Source: Schizochytrium sp. TIO01 (Eukaryota; Protista; Bigyra: Labyrinthulomycetes). Taken from it: 64,000 nucleotides of DNA. The DNA is taken from NCBI GenBank assembly GCA_004764695.1, contig SMSO01000031.1, positions 9,654,761-9,718,760 of the forward strand, in the 5' to 3' direction. Every line of letters begins with the position of its first letter. The stretch's first letter is position 1. Below are positions 18,422 through 45,170 of this stretch, piece by piece. A program made the position numbers and the translations under genes. The notes below the pieces were generated by a model that made no database searches, had not been told where the DNA came from, and saw nothing but the letters and a program-made list of their open reading frames with translations.

Positions 18422-20245
18422 TTATACGGCAGACAGCCTGAGGTTTCCGTCCTCGTGGTGCGGGGTCTTGGATGTCTTGTTCTTGTTTTCACCATTGGTG
18501 TCGTCATTGGCAGTCTCTTCATTATCCTCGTCAAGAGATGATTGTCTTCGGGCCAGGCCTTGTTCCATATCTTCCGTGGCCCGAAGAAACTCATCACGGT
18601 TAGCCTCGGAATAAGAAAGCAAAGTAGTGGACTCTTGTCGGTCAACTTCGTGACGAGGGGGGGCAAAAGCACTTGAGGAGTAGTCTTGATGTGCCAAATG
18701 TGTGTTCGCTGCAGGCCAGGGGTCCTGTTTACGACAACGCAGGACGTCCATAATGGTAAAATTCTTTGGACGACGAAGCGGCTCGCCGCCGAGAGTAGGA
18801 TTCTGATAGTACAATGGATATACAAGCAAGCTTGTGCAAAATCCAATAAAAGCACCAATGAAAACATCGAGAAAGCTATGTTTCATGTCATTAAGGCGGG
18901 TCATGGCTACATACGTAGCCACAACAAACATGACAGAGATGAGTAGGTAGCCATAGCAGAAGGTGCGTTGTTGGACGCCTCGACCGTACACTTGAAGCTT
19001 GCCAGCAAGGTAAAGCCACCAAGTTGTAGCACAGTTAAACAGCACCTGAGTGTGGCCAGACGGCATCGCGCGGTATCCCTCGTGAATAGAGAATTGACTG
19101 TATGAGCCTCCGCCGTAGTATCCTTGGCAGTCGGCCTCAGCTTCTGTGACTGGTCTGTCCCAATACCTACTACACACATTCTGCAACGTGCGCTGACTCA
19201 TATCTTCGCCATTCTGAATAAAGGAGCAGTTGAGCATCTCAGGATAACGATCATCATGCATGCCGCATTGGACAGGGCAGCACTTTTGCGAGCTCAAGTC
19301 GCAAGCGCCTTCGGCATATTTGGATGGGTCCGGGGCACAAGTCCACGTAAAATTTTCCATGCAGGCAGGTGCGCAACGTGCTAAAAAGTCAGGACGAAGC
19401 TCTCCAGTGGCATTGCCAATGATAACCCAAACCACATAGGCAAAGACAATAGGGGCAATGACGACAAGGGCGAAGGAATGCATATCTTCGAACATGTCCC
19501 TGCGCTTAAGCCAAAAGAATATGGCTAGCAACACGCATGGGATAATAACTATGGCTCCGACCATGATCATGGTCACTGTATCTGCATGAAGAGGGTGTTG
19601 GATGTGAATGTCTGCCATGTTAATAGGGTACTCTTGCATCCAATCGATGGGTCCATCTAGAACAATAAGGATGATGGCGCATAACACAATAGCTGCCCAG
19701 TCCATCACATAAGTGTTAGACCACCAGACTGGAATGGGAATGAAATTCCAAAGCTTGAAGGCAATAGTGTTGCCGCTAATATCCTCCACTACTTCCGACG
19801 ATTCATTCCTTGATTTGGTCGTGATGTGAGATGACCTTACGGTGTCTCCGTCCTTACTTAACGGGCTCATCAAGTTGCTCTTCGTTTGTGTCTGGTTGAT
19901 TACTGTTCCAACATTTTGAGGAACATTGCTTGTGGCATTTGATGAATCCTGTGGTGATGCAGCCATTGACGAGGAACGATGAGACAAATTTGGTTTAGGT
20001 GCTGCCGCAGAGGTAGTTTGTATATTTAACGCAGTATGTTGCTGCTCCTTCACCTTCATGTTTGACTCTTGCGGCCCCGGGTTGTCGTCCAAATTCACAT
20101 TAAACTCATTTTGCGTCGTAGACCTGCTCGAGGCCACTGTACTGTCTTCCACATCCACAACACCGTTATCTGATGAGGAAGATTGTCGTCTTGCACTCTG
20201 GTGAGGTTGCCCCTTGGACCCCATATTCGAGGCTGCATCGCCCAT
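18422..20245 (-). CDS. PAP2-family lipid phosphate phosphatase (type 2 phosphatidate phosphatase), ~6 TM
   Basis: C1 ...GELRPDFLARC, C2 PSGH, C3 TRLNDMKHSFLDV (SRxxxxxHxxxD type). Six hydrophobic segments, a Cys-rich loop between C1 and C2, and a long disordered N-terminus. Confidence 0.92.
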   Translation of the reverse strand: MGDAASNMGSKGQPHQSARRQSSSSDNGVVDVEDSTVASSRSTTQNEFNVNLDDNPGPQESNMKVKEQQHTALNIQTTSAAAPKPNLSHRSSSMAASPQDSSNATSNVPQNVGTVINQTQTKSNLMSPLSKDGDTVRSSHITTKSRNESSEVVEDISGNTIAFKLWNFIPIPVWWSNTYVMDWAAIVLCAIILIVLDGPIDWMQEYPINMADIHIQHPLHADTVTMIMVGAIVIIPCVLLAIFFWLKRRDMFEDMHSFALVVIAPIVFAYVVWVIIGNATGELRPDFLARCAPACMENFTWTCAPDPSKYAEGACDLSSQKCCPVQCGMHDDRYPEMLNCSFIQNGEDMSQRTLQNVCSRYWDRPVTEAEADCQGYYGGGSYSQFSIHEGYRAMPSGHTQVLFNCATTWWLYLAGKLQVYGRGVQQRTFCYGYLLISVMFVVATYVAMTRLNDMKHSFLDVFIGAFIGFCTSLLVYPLYYQNPTLGGEPLRRPKNFTIMDVLRCRKQDPWPAANTHLAHQDYSSSAFAPPRHEVDRQESTTLLSYSEANRDEFLRATEDMEQGLARRQSSLDEDNEETANDDTNGENKNKTSKTPHHEDGNLRLSAV

Positions 20246-30900: not shown

Positions 30901-32644
30901 TTTGTAGCGGCATGAAATTACAGAGGACTTAATTGGCGTAGTTGGGCGCTCTGAGTTCTCATGGCAGAGAGGGTGGCATCGGCATCATGTTGCGATAAAT
31001 ATATCCACAGCCACACTGAAAAAAAAAATGATTACAAAGAAAGAAAAATATTTTTGAAGAACAGAAGTTTAGAAAAGAACAGAAAGCGCCGCAGAGCTTC
31101 AGGAGCTATCATAGTACGCACAGCTGAAGGAAATGACTTGGATGAAAAGCTGTCAAAAGCAGAGATAGATGCAGTACCTACCTGCGTTACCGTGGATGAG
31201 ATTACAGTAATCGTCGCCGAGGGCAGATATCGCATGGGATAACGACCACCTCTATTTGTATGTTCTACTTTGTGAACATCTTCGGCTGAAAGCTCTTCAA
31301 AAGCAGAGGGAAGGTTAGCGATCTACTAGAATGACTAAAAGTTGATAGTACTAGAGCAATATAGATACATTCTAAAACGCAGGCTGCACACGGACGCGAA
31401 TGGTGAAATAATGGAAAATAGCGCTCCAAGCTAGAACGGCGACAGATATAGATTAATGAAGTAGAGTGCAAGAGATGTCAGGTGATACGTCTATCCGGAT
31501 CTAAAAGAATTGGTACCCAGTCTTGTTTTGAGAATTATAACATGTCTTTAAAAATCAAGTCCGAGTCGTTTTTATATTATTTTTATTAATTCTGAAAGAA
31601 AAGTTTTTGAAAGACGAAAGAAGAAATAAAAACAAAATTAGGCTCTTTTGCTTTTCTACTAGGAAGAAAAGAGAACAGAGGTTCTCCAATCTTATAATTT
31701 CTTGATCATTGTGCAATAGACCGCATTTCAACCGTACCAGTGCATATAATCTCCTGCCAGTTTCCTCGATATGAAGTTGTATAGGGGCTTCCCCTAAAAC
31801 AAGAACTCTTCAGGTTTGCTAGGAGAGGTTCTAATACTTGAAGAAGTCCTCGTTTGAGCTTATGACAAAAGAAAAGACCTCGAAAAGAGAGAAGTTTCGC
31901 ATCGTTTGTTTGTTTCGAGGAGTCAGCAGCACAAGAGAACCCGCAAAGTCCGTAGACCAGGTCAATTACTATTACATTTAGAAATGATTCATTTTAGAAT
32001 TTTATTCGAAAAAATTAAAATGCTTTTCATTATTTTTACTATTATTATTAGTTTCAACTTTTTTAAAAGGGGGAAAGAACACAGAAGACAGAGACGATCA
32101 AACCCTAGGCAGCTCTAGGCAGGTGATAAATGAATAAATGTGGTGTCGTGTGATGAGCATCATTATTGTAAACCCCATTTACAATTTCGTGCGCGGGGCG
32201 AGGCTTGACGCTCCCCTACGGTTGGAGGTGGCCTCCGGGCTTGGAAAACCGCGACCCTGACAGTGGTACGACCTCGAAGAGTTCCTGCAGGTCTATGAGG
32301 CACTCAAGCGTCAGTTGGTAAAGTTTTGCAGTACTTCAAACTCGACTGGAGCATCGCAAGCTCTATTCACTATTAGCGGAGAGCTCATCTTTCGTACGAG
32401 TTCTACAAACTCTTCGCTGCATAGCCAAAAACACCTTTCATCTAGGCAAAGCCAAAGCCAATCGTTCGGTGCGCGGGGTACTTTTATTTGAGGCCTTGTG
32501 GCAAGAAGGTGGATCCCAAGAGTGTGTTGTGATTAGGCACACGAAGCTTAAAGGAGGCTGTGATAAGGTCTTTGCCCAAATCACTCGAGCAGTGGTTCAA
32601 AGTTTGGATTGCGACACCTACGCGGGCCTCGCCCTGCCTGGAAT

Positions 32645-35600
32645 ATGTCAAATCGTCATTTACCTCCAGGGCAGAGCCGTGGTGAGGTCGAGGATGTAGG
32701 AAACCCATCTAGCTTGGAAGGAGGAATTGTTAACGAGGCTGATGCACAGACCTTACCTTCACTTGCCTCTTCGCCTTCTTCGCCTTCTTCGCCTTCTTCA
32801 CTTTCATCTCCAATTTCGTTGACGCGTCACTCATCATTGCCGTCATCATCTTCCTCAGAAGGGGATGGAAACATAACAGACGAAGAGCACGACTGCACAT
32901 TTGCTTGCCATCAAACGGAGGGACGTGCGATGCCACGAAATGAGGACCTTTCTGACGTGGATTATATCGATCTTGAGCAGCAACATATAGACGAACAGAT
33001 TGACAACTCAAGTAGTGAATTGAATGATTCGAAAACAGAGCTTTCTTCATGGGATCGCTTTGTGTTTGGGTCAGATATTGTGCGTGCAGGGTCCATTGCT
33101 TTGGCTGATGCTGAGTTAAAAGATCGGCCCCAAACCCAATTCAGACATTCAAAAGGTTGGAGTTGTGATGATGACGATGCATATGATGGAGACCGGGAGG
33201 AAGACTCAAAAATGAGCTCTGAGTCACGCAAAAGTGAGTTTGACGCCTCGAGTCTTGGGTGGCTAGCATGGATCTTCTTTGTCGTGTGCGGTGACAATCC
33301 TAATGAGAACCGCACCGGAAGGCATCAACGTTCCCAAAGTGAGCGAAACAAGAAGAAGAGGAAACAAAAGAGACGTCGTGATCAGCTACAGCAGTCATCT
33401 AGACGTAGCAAGGGTTCAAGGACGAGTAGCGGCCGGCGTCTGCTAAAAGCCTTTTCTTCAGGTAGTCTAACACAAAGTTCGGATGGAAGCATTAACTCAA
33501 AAAAGTCAGGACGACCTCGAGGAACTTCATCACCTTCGTTACCAGGTCCTCTAGCTCTTATTAGTATTCATCGCGACCTGAGACGGAAGCGCAAAGTGTC
33601 GCACTTCTCATTTTACACGCCATCTTTTAAGCGAGACTACTTTGGCATTATTGTGGTCCTCAGCCTAAACGCCGTGTTATATGGATTGGATTGGCATGAA
33701 GACACTGCATTTCTTCTTGACGATTCGCGGTTAACATTTCCTCTGCACAAAGACCACACGTGGGTGTGGGGTCTATTGTTTGCAATCATGGGTGTTGGTT
33801 TTATTGGTTGGCGCTGGAACGAACCCGAGACTATCCACGCTTTTTTGTTAACTATGTTAGGATCCATCTTCACTACTAATGTCATTGGCATGACTGCGGC
33901 CAGTGCTTGGGCATCTCCAAGTCCCGATTTTCTCGCTCGGTGCGCACCATTTTGTATGGAAAATATTACGTGGAGATACGTTGGTAATGATACAATTGTT
34001 CAATGCGGATTTCCAGATCCACGTGGAGATGGCTCTACGATATATCAATGTCCTAATGCTAGTCTAAGCCTTGAACAGGCTTGCGCACCTTACTTTCATG
34101 GCATCCCTCTTCGTCCTGAAGACGTATGTGCATCTCTTGATGGATCACTAGGTGAGCCGTACTCAGTCTCAAGAGGTCTTCGAGGGGCATACTCAGCGTC
34201 CGTTGGTTTTATCACCTGCGGCTGCGTGACAATTCTGCTAATTACCTTGGGCTCGCTGAAGCATCGTTCATTTGCTTTTCTGACGGCGGGCCTTTCTTTA
34301 TGTTTCCTTGTCGCATGTGCTGGGGTGGAGAATTCGTCTGGACAGCATGACACATTAGTAACCCTTTACTCGGCACTTCTTGGTATTTTTGTTACCCTTT
34401 CTATATATCCATTGTACTTTCATCCTGTGTGGGAGAACTCAGAGCCACGCCGACGTCCTCGGGCAATCATGCATCTTTTCTTAAACGGTGATCTATCTGA
34501 TTCTGACGACTCTACTGATAATGACAATTCATCCGGAGAGTTTGAACTTGAGGAAACTCTTTTCAAGCATAATGTGAAGAAGGATGAGAAGGAGGAAATC
34601 AAACAAAGTGTTCTGGAGCGAGAGGTTCATGATTCTGACGGCAATCTGGTCACAGAGCGGGAAGAGGTCACTGCACAACAACGTGTACGCTTGTACAACA
34701 GCGAAGCGCATCATATTGATGTCAATGAAAAAGGGGAAGCTGGGCAACCTGATTTGCAAAAGAGCAAATCATTACCGGACTGTGAAGTTATCAAAGAAGA
34801 TGAAACTCTAGATCGTGAAGAAGTTTTTGCAGGCGCAGGGAAATCAACGGTTCAACTTACGCAGCAGCAGGGGGCTGCTACTACAGTCGGTGAGCCTTGC
34901 TCTCAATCATCAAACAAGAACGTGCGTCACAAGCGGCAAATGTTGGAAAGGGCCGGTACAGATATTCGAAATATTCTCCTTTCCACCTTTTCTAAAAGTC
35001 GTCCTGTAGATGGACCTGTACATAGTAGCAGCAGCTCGATTCGTCGTAAGAAAATTCGCGCTCGAGCATTTTGGGACCCGAACTTTAAACAAAAAATGAA
35101 GGACGAGAAGGTATCAAACGTGTACGTGCTGCGAAAATTTTTGCTGCACGATGTAAAACTGATCAACAAGCTCATCCCAGGATACATTCTAGTTTGCGCG
35201 GTTGTAGTTGTGATGTTCTTTCTCTTCTTTTTCACTTTTACTACGAGCAATACCTATGTCATCTGGGCTTGCTTCACTATGGAGCTGTATCTTTTTCCTC
35301 TTTTTGAAACCTTTGCTTCGAGTGCCATTCTCTGGCACGCGGACGTCTTCCTCGGTACTTTCCCCAGAGCTGTTGGTGTAGCCTTTATTTCCGTCTTCTG
35401 GTTCCCTGCTAGTTTATTTATTCGCACTTTCTACGACAAAAATGACTCTGTCTTATGGGGTGTACTTCTTTGTGTATATATAGCAACAAAAATTATTTAT
35501 ACAATTGCTGTAATGGCAACAATTGTATATGTGCAGCGTCGTACTCAAACGTTGCTCGACTCGCCTCGCTTTCACGAGCTCCCGATTCGCCAACAGCATG

Positions 35601-36589
35601 TTCTTCGTAATTATGCATTGAATCTCGACACCAAGGCTCTGCTGAAAATTTTTCCTACCGTGATTGTTGCTGTTGTTTCACTCTATTTCTTGTGGATGTT
35701 TTATACGTACACATTTCTTTCAATTCGAAATCAACAGTTTCTTCAGTATGCAATCACAGGTGTTATTGTACCTCTGCTTGATATTTGCTTTCGTGTGTGG
35801 ATTACTGGATTCATGTCTATGACAATCTCTCGGCTTTTGGGAACGCTTGTGGATGAAGTTGAATCTTTCAATTTTGCTGTGCGCTTTGTGAAAATTGGAT
35901 TTTCTGCCGTACAAGCATTTGGTACTGCTTCTATCACGAGCTATGGCGCATTCATCGCGTCTTTGATATCTCAGACAGTGCTTGAAATTGTTATGATTGT
36001 GTTTTCTATGCTTCGCCGTCACCACCCACGTCGCCCACGAATTCGCAGGCGAATTGCTGACTACCTCGGTTTACCTGGCGACCGCATGTTCCCCGACAAG
36101 ACCAAGCTTGAGAGTGCTAATTTGTACATCAATCAAGACTTGGCGGAGAAACTGTGCATTCCTTTTGGAGCTCTCTTTGCCCAGTTACCTCTCTCGCTCA
36201 CAAGTATCTCAGATGCTTTTCCAACCGATCAGTTGACATGGTATGATGCTATCTTTCGTACACTTATCATGTGCTTTGTTTTTGAAATCCCCGGGGATAT
36301 CTTGCGCTCCTGGCTGGCGACTCGTCGTTTTGGTGTAGATACTTTGCATCTCAAGGTTAGGATTGGCCTTTACCAAATTGGATACATGAGTGTCATGGTG
36401 GCAAGTGCTTTTCTTTGCATTTTGGGTGCACATGCTCTCCTTGTACTTTGGGATCCCGAAGATATCAGCGGTGAAGATAGCGACGATGATGATGACGACG
36501 ACGACGATGATGATGATGACCGAAGGCGAATTCTTCGTCGCGTTGTCAAAGTCGGTGTTAAAATGGCCATTCGTCGCACACTTAAGTAA
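32645..36589 (+). CDS. Degenerate PAP2 (pseudophosphatase) domain fused to an unknown ~10-TM membrane domain, paralog 1
   Basis: SPSPDFLARCAPFCMENITW and VQCG closely match the PAP2 at 18422-20245, but the RP and PSGH motifs are lost. The C-terminal ~470 aa hold about 9-11 hydrophobic segments. Poly-Asp tail. First ATG is at 32645. Confidence 0.85.
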   Translation: MSNRHLPPGQSRGEVEDVGNPSSLEGGIVNEADAQTLPSLASSPSSPSSPSSLSSPISLTRHSSLPSSSSSEGDGNITDEEHDCTFACHQTEGRAMPRNEDLSDVDYIDLEQQHIDEQIDNSSSELNDSKTELSSWDRFVFGSDIVRAGSIALADAELKDRPQTQFRHSKGWSCDDDDAYDGDREEDSKMSSESRKSEFDASSLGWLAWIFFVVCGDNPNENRTGRHQRSQSERNKKKRKQKRRRDQLQQSSRRSKGSRTSSGRRLLKAFSSGSLTQSSDGSINSKKSGRPRGTSSPSLPGPLALISIHRDLRRKRKVSHFSFYTPSFKRDYFGIIVVLSLNAVLYGLDWHEDTAFLLDDSRLTFPLHKDHTWVWGLLFAIMGVGFIGWRWNEPETIHAFLLTMLGSIFTTNVIGMTAASAWASPSPDFLARCAPFCMENITWRYVGNDTIVQCGFPDPRGDGSTIYQCPNASLSLEQACAPYFHGIPLRPEDVCASLDGSLGEPYSVSRGLRGAYSASVGFITCGCVTILLITLGSLKHRSFAFLTAGLSLCFLVACAGVENSSGQHDTLVTLYSALLGIFVTLSIYPLYFHPVWENSEPRRRPRAIMHLFLNGDLSDSDDSTDNDNSSGEFELEETLFKHNVKKDEKEEIKQSVLEREVHDSDGNLVTEREEVTAQQRVRLYNSEAHHIDVNEKGEAGQPDLQKSKSLPDCEVIKEDETLDREEVFAGAGKSTVQLTQQQGAATTVGEPCSQSSNKNVRHKRQMLERAGTDIRNILLSTFSKSRPVDGPVHSSSSSIRRKKIRARAFWDPNFKQKMKDEKVSNVYVLRKFLLHDVKLINKLIPGYILVCAVVVVMFFLFFFTFTTSNTYVIWACFTMELYLFPLFETFASSAILWHADVFLGTFPRAVGVAFISVFWFPASLFIRTFYDKNDSVLWGVLLCVYIATKIIYTIAVMATIVYVQRRTQTLLDSPRFHELPIRQQHVLRNYALNLDTKALLKIFPTVIVAVVSLYFLWMFYTYTFLSIRNQQFLQYAITGVIVPLLDICFRVWITGFMSMTISRLLGTLVDEVESFNFAVRFVKIGFSAVQAFGTASITSYGAFIASLISQTVLEIVMIVFSMLRRHHPRRPRIRRRIADYLGLPGDRMFPDKTKLESANLYINQDLAEKLCIPFGALFAQLPLSLTSISDAFPTDQLTWYDAIFRTLIMCFVFEIPGDILRSWLATRRFGVDTLHLKVRIGLYQIGYMSVMVASAFLCILGAHALLVLWDPEDISGEDSDDDDDDDDDDDDDRRRILRRVVKVGVKMAIRRTLK

Positions 36590-39500
36590 GAAGAATTGCC
36601 ACGCAAGTAGTCAAGGGATTAACACGCCGGAATTATCAACACCCAGAATTATCGTTAGTGGGTGGTCACCTTCTTTGTAAAATATAAAGTTGAATTCTAG
36701 CAATTTTTTAATTTTCTTCTAACTATAATGTAGCCCACTTTTTTTCTAATTGTCGTTGTCGTTTCATTCCCCCACGACTACCAGTACCGAGGAAAATAAA
36801 AGGCAAACATAAGTCTTGCTGCTTCAGGTCGTGCTAGAGCAGAATAAATGCAACCAAATCATGAAAAATGCAAGTACCACAAAACAATGGTAAAGGATTG
36901 CCAGGTTGTGAAGAGCTTGGACTACAGGTCTAGACCCAAGAAAAAGGATTTAAGCATAGCAGGGCTCCTTTGGCGGGTGGTGAGTGAGAGCGAGAACGTA
37001 GCTTTCCACATAGTTTTTGATTAAAAACTAGGTTTATAGACAAATGCTCGGCACTGGCCCCTCAGGCTGCCTCGCAGTTGTCCCTAGAATTATTCTCGGA
37101 ATCTCGCTGCAGAGGTCCATGCCTGAAACAGAGGCCGCAAGTCAGCTCATGCGAAGACAGAGAAGCCACCTCCAGTACCTGCTACCGACATCTGGCAGGC
37201 TGCATTTTGAGGCTCCACCGAAGTCCGCCCACAGCACTACCCATACATTTTCGATCAAACTCGCCATAAATTATGAATTAAACGTCGAAAACTTCTTTGG
37301 AACAACGCATTTAGGTAGTGGAACCTACCTACCGCGACACAAAAGAGTAAACTTCGAGCAAGTATGCTGTCTTTTGGAGAAGCTAAATCCCAAGTTGACC
37401 TACCGTTCAAGAGCTTTTGCGCACGCACTTCCTTTCTGTGGCACTTCTTTGAGCTGATGGCGGTACCTCTCGCTCCAAATGGTTATAGACAATCACGATT
37501 CACGGCAAGCTTTTCATGACAGTCACAAGTTCAATCCGCAGCACTTGGCGTAACATCTCGTGTCACGCTACCATGATGGTAGAGACTGACCGCCTAGGCA
37601 AGCAACAACCTCAAACCTCGTCGGCGTCGTCGTTGTCGTCGTTGTCGTCGTCGTCATGCTTGGAAGGAGTGAGACGCCATCGGAGCTTGACAACGTTAGG
37701 GCATCCTCGTCCCATGACGAATACTCTCACAAGGTGGTCATACCTAAGTTCTTATAGAGGGTGGCTTTTCTAGGTTGGTAGGCACTTTTATAATCTTTAC
37801 AAGCTTTTTATAGCTCCATTTTTAATAATAAGAAGAAGAAGAAGAAGGAGAAGTTGGCATATCGTTTTTTGGTCAAAAAAGTCGGCCTGTAAAGGCGTAA
37901 TTGAAGAGGAGAAAGGATGAAAGAAGGATTGCATGGCACAGAAAATTATCGAAACACGCTGAGCAGTAGACAGACTGGCTGCGAGAGGATCGGTGAATGG
38001 TGCTGAGACGAGTTGCGGAAGAATGGAGAAAGCACTACTACTGATAAACAGGTACCTTTCTTACACTCGAGGTCAGGGACTCTTCGGGTGAACTTGAACT
38101 TTTACTCATAGACTGAGATTATTTAGTTTTCCAAGCTTTCTCTTCAGTGTGTATTTTTTCGAATTATATATATATATATTTTTAATGAATAGTGAAAAAC
38201 TAACTAATACTGTAACCAAAAGTCTTTCTTTCTGCAACAACTCTAAACTATGAAGGTACCAACTATTGCTATTATTTATTATTATATTTATTTGTTGTTT
38301 GTTCAAGTTTGTTTTTAACTTTTAAAAAGTACTTATTTAATTTGGATTTTCTAAAGAGAAGAAAAGGAAGTATTTCTTCAAGTTCCCCTCTACTTCTTCT
38401 ACCAGTGAACTCATTTTATGTGATCTTGTCTTCTGACAAAAAGGAGCGACTTGAACTTGGGAAACAAGAAAGAAGAAAGAAAAAGTGCCTGCACTCTCGG
38501 AGAAATAACTCAAACTTAATGCGAAGAAAATGAAGAGCTCTAAATTAAATGCAGGCTTGAGACTTTGAGTGGCGTGGAAGAACCAGCAAATTATGAAAAC
38601 GTAGATGATACTTCCGATAGAACTTGACACTCGAGGGTCATCTCGTTTATGCCGTCGAGAAGTCGGAATGAAGGGCAATGAATGGACGACAACGGTGTCC
38701 GGCACGGAAATTCTTTGATCGATTGATTGCGAAGCTCTTTGTTCCATTCACGGTGGCAAAAAGCGTTTCTTTAAGTTATAAAAACATAGTGCGCTAGTAT
38801 GTAGGCAAAGCCCCTCCTCAGGCGCACCCTCAGTTAGATTGTTGAGCTGGCCATGGGAAACAGGTCATCCAAGCTCTGCCGAAGGTGCTTGGACTGCGAA
38901 AGACTACTACTATGTATAAAGGTTATGGCTCGAGATCTAATCGAGAATAGCCGAGTAAGCTGTGTTTCATATCTCGTTTCTTCTTTCTTTATAAGTTTAT
39001 TATAACTGGTATGATTTTTAACATGAAATAATAACAATAGTAAAGGCCAACTTGAGTGAACAGTGAACAAAGGGTTTTCTTTCTAAGTTGCAACTATGAA
39101 CGACTGAACAACATCCAGTAGTTTTCATAGCCCTTACTACCTACATAGACCCTATTTCATGATAACAATGTAATTCATGTATTGAAAAAAAATGATTAGC
39201 GAAAGTCTGAAACTAACATTTCTAACCTCTTATTAGAAGTTCTGTTGAAACAAACAAGAGAGAGAGAGCTGTTTGGTACAAAGAAGAAAGCAAGTAGCAG
39301 GTACCAGCATTGTTAAGCCAAAGAAAAGGAGAGCAACCTACGACAACTTCAGGTGCTTTGGAGATAAAGGTCGAGGAAGAATTTGCAAAGACCTTCCCTT
39401 GGAGGTTTTGAGGAACTGCCTTGCGGCAACCAATGGCATTTTATGGCTAGGTTGATTGAGGAGTAGAAGTTGGGTTTTGGTAGCAAAATCAGTAACTCTC

Positions 39501-39637
39501 GGAAAAATAAGGAGACTAACGAAGCGCGGTATTAGAAGAGGACAATTAGCTAAAAACATAGAGTTAGTGATGATCATTGTAGTAATAGTGCATTTGATGT
39601 AATACCCGTTTGACAGTCGCGACGTGCGCCGTGGAGT

Positions 39638-42600
39638 ATGCCGGGCTCCGGCGATGGAGCTACGATAGAAGGCTCTGGCGTAGAAGAGGACTTTGAAAAT
39701 AAACTAGAAAGGACGTCGACCCCGCCAATAAGCTTTCTGGTTGACAAGTTTGCTGCTGTTAGGTCTAGAAGTGGTGACGATGATGGAGACTGTGTTGCGA
39801 AACTTGAAGTGGAAAAGCGCGAGGACGAGGAAAGTGCAACTGGGGTTTCACGCATATGCGACGCAAATAGCAGTTATCAAGATGATGAGGAGGAAGGATA
39901 TGCCAGTGATGGAGAAAGTGATAACGACGAAGGCTACGATGACTCAGATGTAGATACGTTTTTAGAAGACGAAGAACTCGAGAAGAAACATGGGTCGACT
40001 TCCAAGGATTCATGGAAAATGAGGGATGCACAAGATAGAGAGCAACAAGTAGAGCTTGAAATTGACATGTCCAAGGTGGAGCGCACATCATTGTTACAAG
40101 AAGTATTAGAGGAAGATCTGAAAGACAATGTTGGTAATGAGGCTTCAACACCACGCCGTCTCAAACGTATGCACGGCGCTCGAATGCGTGCTGAAGATCT
40201 CCAATCGCTCACATCACGAGAAGATGACTGTGAGGTTTGCAACTACGATGATTTGTCATTTGCTTCCAAAATATTCTATATTCTCTTTTCTTCTCGGGAT
40301 AAGCTCCATCGTAAACTGGAGAACGAGCGTAGGCGAGAGATACGGGCGCAAAGGACCTTCCAGCAAATGTGCCGTAACCGACGGGAGAAGAAGAGGCGCA
40401 CCTTGTACTGGGAGCGTGTACGCCCCGGGTACCGGCCCAAAATATCTTTATATGAGCTTCTTCGAGCAAGGTATCCGTTCTACTCGCCGTCATTTGCTAG
40501 GGATTATCAGGGAATTGTGCTGATGCTAATCATCGCTGCTATACTCTATGGTGTAGACTACTACAAAACTTCTACTTTTATTCTCGATGACCCATCGATT
40601 AATCACCCGCTTCATCGAGACATCACATGGTTCTCTTCAATCCTTGCAGTGGTGCCTTATATCCTTCTATACTTTAATTTTTTCCACGATCGGGAAACCA
40701 TGCATGCTGTAGCGCTAGCCACAGCTGGGTCTGTCACTACAATATTTATGGTAGGGCTTATGATGTCCGGTACTTGGGGCAGCCTTAGTCCAGACTTTCT
40801 CGCCCGCTGTGGGCCACAATGCCTTGAAAATGTGACATGGATGAGAACAAACAATTCTTATAAAGTTGCCCAATGCGGGTACAGTGACCCGCGCCTAAGC
40901 GACGATCATACAATCCTCATATGTCCTCTGCGGCATTTGTCTTTAGAAGAGGCTTGCGGAGGTTTAGCGAAAGGAATGCCCCTACATGCTAATGACTACT
41001 GTGTTGGTCCCGTAAACCACTACGCGGACTTTTATGCTCTTGCCAAAGGGTACCGAGGTGGAGTGTCAAACTCCCTCGCCATTATTGTGGCTGTGTGTTA
41101 TATATTTGCTGTCGTTATATTTCGGCGGAGGGGCTGGGTTTATGGTAGTCTGGCAATGGTCTATGCAGCATGTAGTGTCTGTGCAGTCTGGGGTTTGCTC
41201 TTAGCATACGGAAAGCATGACCAGGTGGCTTGTATTCTTTCTATGGTGATGGGTTTATTGTTTGCTATATCAATTTCAAATCTCTACTTCGATCCGCACA
41301 CAGGAATTGCTCGTCGCCGGCCTCCCTTCACATTGCATTTTGTTAATTGGTGGCGAGGCGATGAGGATTCTTCGGAGTCTGAATCAGAAATATTTGATTC
41401 CGCATCTGAGTTTGGAGATTCCGAATACTCCGAACATGATGGTGACACTGCAGACGACCAAAATAAAAACGACGACGACGACGACGAGGATGATGAGGAA
41501 GATGAAGAAGATGACGTCGAAAAGGCTTTCGAACGTACACTTTCGTCTCCAACCGAAGAAAGTCACATTAATTCAGTTCACTCTGCACCAGCAAGTTTAT
41601 TGCATGATGGAGAAGAGACTCCGGGAAGTCTTGATGGTTCTCTTGTCGAAACAAGGCGTAGTAAGTTCGCCTCTCGTTTACAGCCTGTTAAACCAATCAA
41701 AGGTAATGAGCTGGCTTTAGAGGCGGGCCTATTTGACCATGCCCCACGCACTCCACAAAACGAGAACCGATACTATTCAATGGTCCGTGAGCGAGAACTT
41801 GAACATCAGCGTAAGGAACGTTTGAAGCATGGATCTGAAATCATTCGACAACAGAAACAAAGAGTACGAGAGCGATCTATGGACACTGTTTCCTCGTTCA
41901 TTCCTTCTATCGCCACAAAGCCAAGGCAGTCTTCAAGTATTCCAACCACGCATCCCTCTTCGACAACAATGCGGCGTCGCCGCATTCAGCCTCGGGCCTA
42001 TTGGGACCCAGACTACAAAACCAAAATCCGAGCAGATGGGTTTTCGTATACTTATATGTTCCGCAGAATGCTCGGGAGGGAGTTGACAGCCTTACAGGAT
42101 GTGCGTCCAGCTCATATTATTGTACTTGGTGCGTTGGCAGTAATGTACTTTCTTTTCCTTCGTGTTTACGGCCGAACGACAAACTCTGTCATGTGGATCG
42201 CCTTAACCTTGGAGCTGTCCTTATACCCAATTTACGAAAGTTTTGCGATACATTCCATCATTTGGCGATCTGACATGTCTGTCAGTGGTTGGGCCACTTT
42301 GCTCGGTCTTGGAACAAGCTTGGCAGTATGGGTTGGTAGCACAATCAAAGCACATTCCGATGGTATTGAAGAAGAGTCCCCCCGCTACTGGGTGACATTC
42401 TTGTCCGCCTATATTGGAGCCAAGTCCACCTACATTGTCACCCACGTCCTTGTGTCGCTTTTACTGTGGTATCGCCTTGAGCACGATGGAAACATGTTTC
42501 GCATCTCACTACGTCCGGGGCTGGCAACATCTGTTCCATTTAAGTTTCTTCTTATGATCCCTGCTTTGGCATTCACCACCCTTGCACTGCTCATAGTTCT

Positions 42601-43366
42601 TTGCTTCTACACTTATCAATACTTAGAGCTGAAGAATCAATTCGTTCAGTACGCTGCTGTGATTATGGTTGCAATCGTCGATGCGACAACTCGAGTCTGG
42701 CTCACAGCATTGTTAACAAAAGGTATTGTTGCCGTGCTTAATGAAGCGGATGAAATTCAAGCATACCTTTTTGCAATTCGTACAGTGAAAATTGGATTTG
42801 CACTTGTACAGGGTTTCTCCATGGCACGTTTAAATAGCTTCGGTGCCTTTATTCTTGCCAACATTACCAATAACATGGTAGAAATTGGGATGCTCTTTCT
42901 GAGTGCATTCCGTCGCCACCATCCGCGAGCACCACACATCCGTGTCCACATTGCGAACGCACTAGGGTTGCCTGGTTGGCAGATGTTCCCACAAAAGACA
43001 CGTCTGGAAACTGCACTGCTAATTCGAACTCAAGAGGCTGCGGAACTGCTGGCTGTATCCTTTGGGCCAATCATTAGTCAAATTCCACTGTACCTTGACA
43101 ATGGAAGTCGTCTTGGAATTGAAGCTCTTCCATGGTGGCAAGTTGTCATTCGGACTGCTTTCATGGTCTGTGTCATTGAAATCCCTGTAGATCTCCTGAA
43201 AAATTGGATGTCGACACGCGTCTTTGGTCTAGACACGTTCCATGTGCGTCCGCAAGTTCTTGATACTTATGCAATTTGCTATATGGCTATCATGTCACTT
43301 CTTGGATTTCTCTCTGTGTTGGTTGGTCATGAGTTGTACATCCTCTGGGAGATCATATTTGACTGA
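39638..43366 (+). CDS. Degenerate PAP2 (pseudophosphatase) domain fused to an unknown ~10-TM membrane domain, paralog 2
   Basis: Collinear with paralog 1: FYSPSFARDY, LSPDFLARCGPQCLENVTW, RAYWDP, VKIGF, RRHHPRAPHIR...LGLPG..MFP.KT.LE, EIPVDLL. Confidence 0.85.
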   Translation: MPGSGDGATIEGSGVEEDFENKLERTSTPPISFLVDKFAAVRSRSGDDDGDCVAKLEVEKREDEESATGVSRICDANSSYQDDEEEGYASDGESDNDEGYDDSDVDTFLEDEELEKKHGSTSKDSWKMRDAQDREQQVELEIDMSKVERTSLLQEVLEEDLKDNVGNEASTPRRLKRMHGARMRAEDLQSLTSREDDCEVCNYDDLSFASKIFYILFSSRDKLHRKLENERRREIRAQRTFQQMCRNRREKKRRTLYWERVRPGYRPKISLYELLRARYPFYSPSFARDYQGIVLMLIIAAILYGVDYYKTSTFILDDPSINHPLHRDITWFSSILAVVPYILLYFNFFHDRETMHAVALATAGSVTTIFMVGLMMSGTWGSLSPDFLARCGPQCLENVTWMRTNNSYKVAQCGYSDPRLSDDHTILICPLRHLSLEEACGGLAKGMPLHANDYCVGPVNHYADFYALAKGYRGGVSNSLAIIVAVCYIFAVVIFRRRGWVYGSLAMVYAACSVCAVWGLLLAYGKHDQVACILSMVMGLLFAISISNLYFDPHTGIARRRPPFTLHFVNWWRGDEDSSESESEIFDSASEFGDSEYSEHDGDTADDQNKNDDDDDEDDEEDEEDDVEKAFERTLSSPTEESHINSVHSAPASLLHDGEETPGSLDGSLVETRRSKFASRLQPVKPIKGNELALEAGLFDHAPRTPQNENRYYSMVRERELEHQRKERLKHGSEIIRQQKQRVRERSMDTVSSFIPSIATKPRQSSSIPTTHPSSTTMRRRRIQPRAYWDPDYKTKIRADGFSYTYMFRRMLGRELTALQDVRPAHIIVLGALAVMYFLFLRVYGRTTNSVMWIALTLELSLYPIYESFAIHSIIWRSDMSVSGWATLLGLGTSLAVWVGSTIKAHSDGIEEESPRYWVTFLSAYIGAKSTYIVTHVLVSLLLWYRLEHDGNMFRISLRPGLATSVPFKFLLMIPALAFTTLALLIVLCFYTYQYLELKNQFVQYAAVIMVAIVDATTRVWLTALLTKGIVAVLNEADEIQAYLFAIRTVKIGFALVQGFSMARLNSFGAFILANITNNMVEIGMLFLSAFRRHHPRAPHIRVHIANALGLPGWQMFPQKTRLETALLIRTQEAAELLAVSFGPIISQIPLYLDNGSRLGIEALPWWQVVIRTAFMVCVIEIPVDLLKNWMSTRVFGLDTFHVRPQVLDTYAICYMAIMSLLGFLSVLVGHELYILWEIIFD

Positions 43367-45170
43367 GCTTGTAGCATTTGCCACTCTGCAAAGTGCTACT
43401 CATAGAAATGCACTATTTTGTAATAGAAAAATACTGTACCTCCATTTTATCGACCATTTGTATGTATGAATAATCAATCAGATCAATTCAAGAATATTCT
43501 ATTTTTTATCACAAGACTATTGAGTACGAAAGTCACCTATGATTTTACTTAATTAATGCACATTAAAATTTACAGATTACACTTTATTACCATTTTAAAA
43601 GGGCATTTCTAATATACAACATGCGCCTGCATCATTATTCAATTGTTTGTTTGTTTGTTTGTTTGAAAACGTTGCGCAACGAAGAGTCAGGCGAAACATG
43701 ATTCTAAAATGGAGATCGACAAGCTCGACCATAAGCTCGGAAAAAAGACCCTAATTTTCCGTTAGTCATTTTGGTCCTGTGAATTTCAGCTCTGACCAGT
43801 GGTGAATCGATATCCTGATTTTCAATCGTTTGATTTTTCATGTAAAATAACTTGATACCAAACTTCGCCCGGAAGCCGCTTACGAAGCGCTCCATTCTGG
43901 AGTCTTTGAGGAAGAAAGTCCCTTCAAAACAATGATATAGCAGTATACGGGGAGGGGTGTTTAACACCAGTAGAAACAACCAAGAACATGAAACTGAATA
44001 GCAGAAACGGGTAGTCACAGAACCGACTCAATATTACAATTGTTTTATTTATTTGGACGTTCAGTTGACCCTCTTCAAATAAATGCAGCGGATATTGCTA
44101 TCTTCGTTCACAACAATTTACCAAAAATCCATATTGTCATGCGCGAATCTAGCGCCTCAAATCTTGTACAGTCTTGTGGTACAGTGAATATGAGCCTCTA
44201 TACCAGCCTTGCTTCTCTGAACTAAACGCAGCGAGCGGGTCTCCACACTGTTCGATTGCCAGAACTATCAGATTGAACCCTCTATTGATTCCGTGTACTG
44301 CGATGCGCGTTCCCTGGAGCTCCTTTTGTTTCGCATACAATACCATTCTTGTAGTCAAGCCGTCTGCTAGACTTGTGGACCCCTCACGCAGCCTTCACAA
44401 AACGGTTTAAATCTTATGGACTTTCCTCAACTATGTCTCTTTACCACCTGTCGACACAAGTGTTTGGACAGGTTTTAACCTTGCAATAACCCTCTATGCT
44501 GTAGCCATAGGAACAAAACCAGCCCAAGAATATGTTTCACAACATAGTGACACCAAGCACTTCGCAGCAATGTTCTTATACCAATCATCAGTTCCACAAG
44601 AAGTGGCGTAGAACATTTCTTATGCGATCCTTGCTCAGAAATCACATGAACTCTATAGGTTTATATCTTCTTCACGCGAGTTCGCTTTGTAAGATTAGCG
44701 AGGGCCAAGCCTTGACCACGTTAATTTAAAACTTCACTAGCGCTTTAAGAATGGCATTTCGAAAGGACGGCGCTGATAAGTTTGTTTTATTCCCTTTCCA
44801 GGGGGGTGAAGCCTGCTAGAAGGTTTGAATCCACCATGTCTTGACATCACCCTAGTAAAACTTTCATACATCTGTTCCGGAATCTATTCAAATTACAGGT
44901 ATTACCTTTTGTCTCTGGTCTAAAATTCTACTTTAAAATCGAAGCTCATTGTTTTAGCATAAGACAGACTTCAGACCAGTGGACAACTACTAAAAATTGT
45001 TAATGGGAATTAAAGTGGGGATTAAGACGACTCCGCAATAGGTAAAATCAACTATTTCATTATCATGGCCATCTGATTTTCTCTTTTGCAGAGCGAAGCA
45101 GCGAGAAGTAGCTTAGCTTCACTGCTAGCGAACCCTTGGGGGCTTACAGACTCCAAAATATTGATGATAG

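Follow-up and report, generated by a model that had tools for sequence, protein, structure and literature searches.

Within a window of 64,000 nucleotides from the 64-Mb, intron-poor genome of Schizochytrium sp. TIO01 (contig SMSO01000031.1; all positions are those of this whole stretch), two neighboring genes, here called W1 and W2, each encode, in one polypeptide, a conserved fusion in which a catalytically dead lipid phosphate phosphatase (LPP) of the PAP2 type, facing outward, is followed by an orphan, polar-lined membrane domain of 11 helices. We tentatively regard W1 and W2 as anciently duplicated, expressed genes, transcript-like contigs being seen for W2, and the whole protein as a lipid-handling translocator or sensor rather than a PAP2-type enzyme, in which a dead LPP is joined to a working 11-helix module; we are almost as ready to believe this account as to doubt it.

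32645..36589, plus strand: W1, complete open reading frame (ORF) of 1314 amino acids (aa) from the first ATG; the ORF opens at TTG 32609 (32609..36589)
39638..43366, plus strand: W2, complete ORF of 1242 aa

The two genes lie on the same strand with 3 kb between them, and neither has an internal stop in its 1314 or 1242 codons. Their products are paralogs, with 30% identity across ~1086 aligned residues (E 3e-157); an exact-sequence look-up of both proteins, and of a 607-aa LPP paralog encoded upstream, found no identical entry in the protein collection. That W1 and W2 are real is far beyond chance, given that both ORFs exceed 1200 codons, that other species have orthologs and that, of 11 single-nucleotide polymorphisms (SNPs) between strains within the W2 ORF, 10 are synonymous and 1 is non-synonymous, the one replacement falling in the linker (41541). 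Logan contigs from four runs of four studies, the runs being tentatively taken for RNA and the contigs being assemblies and not single molecules, were placed on 38500-44400. Three runs from three studies each gave a single contig over the whole W2 ORF without joints (39524-43412, 39543-43511 and 39619-43455, the last with sequencing adapter at its 5' end) and left the flanking intergenic DNA uncovered, and in the fourth run a contig begins at 39636 and continues downstream. This pattern is transcript-like, as of an unspliced transcript with short untranslated regions that takes in the linker and the domains on either side of it (~39524-43511).

The layout was compared among five full-length family members. 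A variable N-terminus (115-311 aa, mean pairwise identity 26%) is followed by an N-domain block of 288-298 aa with six hydrophobic segments (37%), an acidic linker, rich in Ser and variable (62-217 aa, 27%), and a C-domain block of 460-469 aa with 11 helices (41%; in W1 an extra tail brings it to 511 aa), so that the domain lengths are constant and the lengths vary in the N-terminus and the linker. A word-indexed protein search returned three full-length relatives of 930-1158 aa and one W2 fragment. The nearest named homolog is the Hondaea fermentalgiana hypothetical protein GBG25132.1 (P0002), and the two other full-length relatives are of JGI origin. When 1.84 billion representative proteins were searched exhaustively by HMMER with the C-domain profile, 9 matched, all of them family members or fragments, with full-length relatives seen only in other thraustochytrids; the sole C-domain-only match, P0005, is not a gene in its own right but a fragment, since its contig is 1641 nt long. 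No relative was found in a metagenome scan with the C-domain alignment, the word-indexed search with a C-only profile returned family members only at E <= 10, the own-genome profile search with the C-domain returned W1 and W2 only at the same threshold, and Pfam and NCBIfam gave no match to full-length W1 and W2 or to either domain. The family is restricted to thraustochytrids, and each member is one polypeptide with 17 predicted membrane helices. The first-pass annotation of this DNA had proposed two intact paralogous ORFs, one gene per fusion, with a disordered N-terminus, a block of six transmembrane segments, an acidic linker and a second block of about 9-11 hydrophobic segments, in an architecture that it did not recognize; all of this is borne out, the second block having 11 helices and the design of PAP2 plus 11 helices being in neither Pfam nor NCBIfam.

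The N-terminal domains and the features used to place them are as follows.

33587..34459, plus strand: W1 PAP2 domain, LPP-type, catalytically degenerate, residues 315-605, six hydrophobic segments
33899-33943, 34187-34201 and 34340-34360, plus strand: W1 motif remnants C1, C2 (AYSAS) and C3 (GQHDTLV)
40445..41347, plus strand: W2 PAP2 domain, LPP-type, catalytically degenerate, residues 270-570
40766-40810, 41060-41074 and 41210-41230, plus strand: W2 motif remnants C1 (SGTWGSLSPDFLARC), C2 (GVSNS) and C3 (GKHDQVA)
40826-40840, plus strand: W2 conserved sequon ENVTW
18422..20245, minus strand: stand-alone LPP paralog of 607 aa, located 12 kb upstream of W1; it shares the Cys-rich loop, matches PF01569 with 59.3 bits and has PSGH and TRxxxxxHxxxD intact

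Searched against the ORFs of its own genome, the N-domain of W2 matches two canonical PAP2 proteins, the 607-aa paralog in the window (E 9.6e-17) and L006, an ORF of 442 aa on another contig (E 1.3e-15). Both pass PF01569, L006 with 66.9 bits against a gathering cut-off of 27.2, and both carry PSGH and TRxxxxxHxxxD, L006 also KxxxxxxRP. Common to W1, W2 and these two LPPs is the loop RPDFLARC...C..N.TW...QCG..D.R...C...C...C, with six shared cysteines and an N-x-T sequon, all of which are invariant in the fusion family; the 607-aa paralog is the link within the window between W1/W2 and the PAP2 family. A profile that included the own-genome paralogs reached the Hondaea 'Phospholipid phosphatase 2' (P0012) and plant LPP1-like proteins and, among solved structures, human PLPP2 and PLPP1 at 1e-5. 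The N-terminal block has the six-helix PAP2 fold, and a search independent of Foldseek over 48,161 chains gave PAP2-superfamily matches with G6PC1 (13.4), LpxE (12.3), PgpB (12.1), SMSr (12.0) and Aur1 (11.1). PF01569 gave no match to W1 or W2 at E <= 10, and the family member P0003, searched singly, gave a weak one (E 0.0066, 16.6 bits), below the cut-off. The disulfide-rich, glycosylatable loop and the former active site face the lumen or the outside. The 607-aa paralog itself has Gly at the C1 Lys position (..IIGNATGELRPD), long low-complexity N- and C-terminal tails and an enlarged Cys-rich loop with four more cysteines than W1 and W2, and it may be impaired or specialized in its own right.

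Motif positions were aligned with the canonical own-genome paralogs and with plant and fungal LPPs (KxxxxxxRP, PSGH and [ST]RxxxxxHxxxD). In C1, whose remnants end in ...ASPSP (W1) and ...GSLSP (W2), the Lys is replaced by Ser or Ala in all members and the Arg by Ser, Gly or Thr in all except P0002, where it is kept; the Pro is kept. PSGH of C2 has become VSNS in W2 and YSAS in W1 (FSIS, FSIS, YSPS and VSLT in others; family consensus [VYF]S[NAISPL][ST]), with only the Ser kept. C3 has lost its Arg in all members and keeps its Asp only in P0003, and its His (W2 His527; GQHD in W1, GKHD in W2) is invariant, as are Ser477, Ser479, Asp386 and Arg390 (W2 numbering). In human PLPP1 the substitutions K120A, R127A, S169A, H171A, R217A and H223A each drop activity to background, and the phosphate is held by K120, R127 and R217 and is also engaged by E162 (PMC13745504). 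Four of the six required residues are replaced in both W1 and W2, and the equivalents of K120, R127, R217 and E162 are all replaced, that of E162 by Lys or Arg in 4 of 5 members. Having lost Lys and, outside P0002, Arg from C1, Gly and His from C2, and Arg and in most members Asp from C3, the N-domain is judged unable to work as a PAP2 phosphatase. The first-pass assignment of the N-terminal half to the PAP2 fold and its view that the Cys-rich outer loop is kept both hold, and its readings of the eroded C1, C2 and C3 motifs proved exact; the dead PAP2 domain, the fusion and the novelty of the architecture are all supported.

A maximum likelihood tree of the N-domain, which took in no sequence of the vertebrate PLPPR/PRG proteins, shows the fusion family as monophyletic (100/99) beside the thraustochytrid LPPs. 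Within it, W2 pairs with Hondaea GBG25132.1 (99/98) and W1 with P0004 (94/95), and the W1/W2 duplication is therefore older than the divergence of these sources; it is an old one of which both copies were retained. The six-Cys loop insertion is common to the fusion family and the thraustochytrid LPPs and is lacking in plant and fungal LPPs. The sharing of this loop with the local LPPs shows an origin within the lineage, independent of the metazoan PLPPRs, from which no descent was found, and the PAP2 domain descended from the lineage's own Cys-rich-loop LPPs.

The second membrane block lies at these positions.

34985..36463, plus strand: W1 C-domain, orphan, 11 helices, with the basic loop RRHHP...KTKLE at 36014-36112; a W1-specific tail follows
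41975..43363, plus strand: W2 C-domain, orphan, 11 helices, with the juxtamembrane motif QPRAYWDPDYKTK at 41987-42025 and the basic cytosolic loop RRHHPRAPHIRV...KTRLE at 42911-43009

AlphaFold2 places 11 long helices in the C-domain, and hydropathy gives the same segments. Its N-terminal end is predicted to be cytosolic because it follows the PAP2 C-terminus and the acidic linker, and with an N-in/C-out arrangement all five proteins have 21-28 Lys and Arg residues in the inside loops vs 2-4 in the outside ones, which supports the modeled topology of 11 helices, N-in/C-out, with very short outer loops. Helices 8 and 9 are connected on the cytosolic side by a conserved basic loop, RRHHPRAPHIRVRIAN..GLPG..MFPQKTRLE. 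Some 15 ionizable or polar residues within the helices are invariant (in W2 numbering E859, E867, K929, Q1004, D1015, R1019, R1048, K1051, Q1058, E1082, E1136, R1172, E1181, D1185 and H1231), a buried-polar pattern that would be more readily explained by a path for translocation, or by an active site within the membrane, than by a passive anchor.

Several assignments for this domain were tried and rejected. An internal repeat (hhalign of the two halves) and an origin as a degenerate PAP2 duplicate each gave a probability of 0.1; membrane pyrophosphatase, suggested by a weak PDB-sequence match (E 0.043) and weak fold matches, gave 0.05 against four own-genome H+-pyrophosphatases; and the MBOAT and GT-C acyl- or glycosyltransferases, considered in view of the domain's 11 helices and conserved His, had no Pfam match and were not among the fold matches. 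Foldseek of both C-domain models against the PDB gave no match at E <= 0.001. In a protein-language-model search with both C-domains, the nearest entries were unnamed oomycete, green-algal and cnidarian clusters of ~500-600 aa (0.92-0.95, with 206-224 shared features), some of which carry Pfam PF28488 (SPCC553_12c); S. pombe SPCC553.12c is annotated as a predicted transmembrane transporter (PMC5990653). The PF28488-type proteins are not among the C-domain matches in the 1.84 billion proteins, and the likeness, which has no alignment, E-value or structure behind it, is a lead. The genome also encodes 13 PF01569 matches, three anoctamins, about seven OSCA/RSN1 homologs and four H+-pyrophosphatases, so that W1 and W2 exist beside canonical versions of every family considered.

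We suggest that the polar-lined 11-helix module does the work of the protein, most likely by moving a lipid head group, an ion or a small solute across the membrane. The dead LPP module, from which the variable acidic cytosolic linker leads to the 11-helix domain, may be kept for non-catalytic lipid recognition and/or oligomerization, as in the vertebrate PLPPRs. This role is proposed by analogy, because PLPPRs are without phosphatase activity and yet modulate or take up lysophosphatidic acid (LPA) (PMC9520309), and because LPPs and PLPPRs multimerize. Some points weigh against such a lipid-handling protein: the cationic phosphate ligands are gone, so that a lipid phosphate does not suggest itself as the ligand; the C-domain models are of middling confidence (predicted local distance difference test, pLDDT, 61-62); and no relative of known function was detected for the C-domain in Pfam (E <= 10), by HMMER in 1.84 billion proteins, with the PDB-sequence profile or in the own genome. 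The first-pass annotation had gone further, proposing that the dead module binds phosphatidic acid, LPA or sphingosine 1-phosphate and controls the fused domain. That proposal is not supported; canonical lipid-phosphate binding looks doubtful because all cationic phosphate ligands are lost, and the claim is weakened. A prediction of the W2 N-domain in complex with the C-domain scored 0.00, which counts neither for nor against docking.

The dead LPP might instead be mainly an assembly or trafficking scaffold that tetramerizes the protein or recruits active LPP paralogs, such as the one 12 kb upstream, and the 11-helix domain would then act beside a live phosphatase, or would not depend on any recognition of lipid at the dead site. 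It is in keeping with such a scaffold that PLPP1 is a lipid-organized tetramer (PMC13745504), that PRG5/PLPPR5 multimerizes (PMC11471602), that active paralogs, one of them in the window, have the same Cys-rich loop, and that phosphate ligands were lost while helix packing and loop cysteines were conserved; the invariance of His527, Ser477 and Ser479 where the active site used to be suggests, however, that the pocket is still constrained, and we consider a scaffold unlikely, if well worth keeping in mind. It is scarcely credible that two separate genes or decaying pseudogenes pose as one ORF. The poorly conserved, disordered linker would allow for this, as would the fact that the transcript-like contigs concern W2; the absence of stops, the single contigs spanning all of W2 in three studies, the same fusion in all four full-length relatives from other thraustochytrid sources, the 10:1 excess of synonymous strain SNPs and the fragmentary nature of P0005 all speak against it. 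A further alternative is that the N-domain is repurposed and not dead: His527, both Ser residues and basic residues newly present close to C2 would support another reaction, for example that of a transferase, which feeds the C-domain. The invariance of His527, Ser477, Ser479, Asp386 and Arg390, the Lys or Arg at the position of PLPP1 E162 and the PAP2-fold transferases SMSr and Aur1 among the fold matches would agree with this. Sphingomyelin and inositol phosphorylceramide synthases, however, keep both His residues and the Asp, whereas the C2 His is gone and the C3 Asp mostly gone in the fusion family, and single Ala changes at four of the replaced positions suffice to kill PLPP1; we hold a repurposed enzyme to be very unlikely.

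The C-domain has also been considered as a very divergent member of the TMEM16/OSCA/TMC superfamily, in which case a pseudo-phosphatase for lipid recognition would be built into a scramblase or channel. TMEM16F was the top Foldseek match of the first C-only model (E 0.029, probability 0.66), and the TMEM16-likeness is kept as a lead of low probability. Against it, no match to Pfam Anoctamin (PF04547), RSN1_7TM (PF02714) or TMC was found at E <= 10; hhalign gave a probability of 0.1 with the three own-genome anoctamins and 1.1 with six OSCA homologs, compared with 33 for an anoctamin-vs-OSCA control; and the own-genome profile search (E <= 10) returned only W1 and W2. TMEM16 and TMC proteins have 10 helices with both ends cytosolic, a topology from which the predicted 11 helices, N-in/C-out, differ. 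Membership of this superfamily is rather unlikely, and it is quite unlikely that the 11-helix domain is a diverged scramblase or channel of this kind for which the outward dead LPP pocket acts as a built-in lipid sensor. If true, it would be a lipid-gated scramblase or channel that uses a recruited pseudo-phosphatase to bind its ligand, an invention separate from that of the animal PLPPRs.

The regions outside the two membrane blocks hold some further features.

34460..34984, plus strand: W1 linker, acidic, Ser-rich, poorly conserved, with the conserved short motif EFELEETLFKH at 34538-34570
41348..41974, plus strand: W2 linker, acidic, disordered (pLDDT 25-45), with the motif ELALEAGLFDH at 41708-41740 and the only non-synonymous strain SNP

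The short linear motif of both linkers, [AF]xLExxL[FY], is also present in P0002, P0003, P0004 and P0006, and an invariant SDSE-type acidic Ser cluster, which resembles a CK2 site, directly follows the RRRP motif. A conserved hydrophobic, Cys-containing segment in the disordered N-terminus (LSFASKIFYILFSS at W2 206-219, 40253-40294; LGWLAWIFFVVCGD at W1 204-217, 33254-33295), also found in P0002-P0004 and located 70-110 residues ahead of helix 1, may serve as a membrane anchor, either lipidated or amphipathic. Only W1 has at its end a run of 13 Asp residues and then a basic amphipathic tail, RRRILRRVVKVGVKMAIRRTLK (36482-36586), which would lie outside the cytosol by the predicted topology. 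In the spacer between W1 and W2, a low-depth minus-strand contig of one run (38500-38972) overlaps a 136-aa ORF (38337-38747, minus strand) and may mark a small transcribed unit.

Dead PAP2/LPP proteins are known mainly as the vertebrate PLPPR/PRG proteins, whose mode of action is debated. A protist lineage that made dead LPPs independently and joined them to a conserved, polar-lined membrane domain offers a natural experiment on the use of a dead LPP pocket, and a fold and an activity for the orphan 11-helix domain would add a new membrane-protein family. As thraustochytrids are industrial producers of lipids rich in docosahexaenoic acid, a lipid-handling membrane protein specific to the lineage could matter there for lipid trafficking or membrane homeostasis.

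Among known systems, the PF28488 (SPCC553_12c) proteins and the unnamed clusters resemble the C-domain as all-helical membrane proteins of similar size, by language-model features alone, and, to judge by how the clusters are annotated, they lack the LPP domain of W1 and W2. The eukaryotic LPPs (LPP/PLPP1-3), above all the thraustochytrid ones with a Cys-rich loop (18422-20245, L006 and P0012), share with W1 and W2 an LPP-type first outer loop of the form D-x-[SR]-[IL]-x-x-P-L, an RPDFLARC-type C1 region, the N-x-T sequon between C1 and C2 and the six loop cysteines, and homology is clear from the sequence (E 1e-16 and 1e-15); unlike these LPPs, W1 and W2 have the catalytic replacements described above, fall below the Pfam threshold and bear a 460-aa 11-helix domain at the C-terminus. 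The comparison with vertebrate PLPPR1-5/PRG1-5 is one of analogy only, because the fusion family arose independently from thraustochytrid LPPs. Like W1 and W2, the PLPPRs are LPP-derived six-helix proteins that have lost catalytic and phosphate-binding residues and are still conserved, with a long intracellular extension after helix 6 (in PLPPR3 with a poly-Glu box), and they have been proposed as non-catalytic modulators or transporters of LPA (PMC9520309). W1 and W2 have what defines the PLPPRs, an LPP fold in which residues for catalysis and phosphate binding are substituted (PMC9520309). Whereas an unstructured intracellular C-terminal domain is the only extension of a PLPPR, that of W1 and W2 is not a soluble tail: the linker leads into the 11-helix membrane domain.

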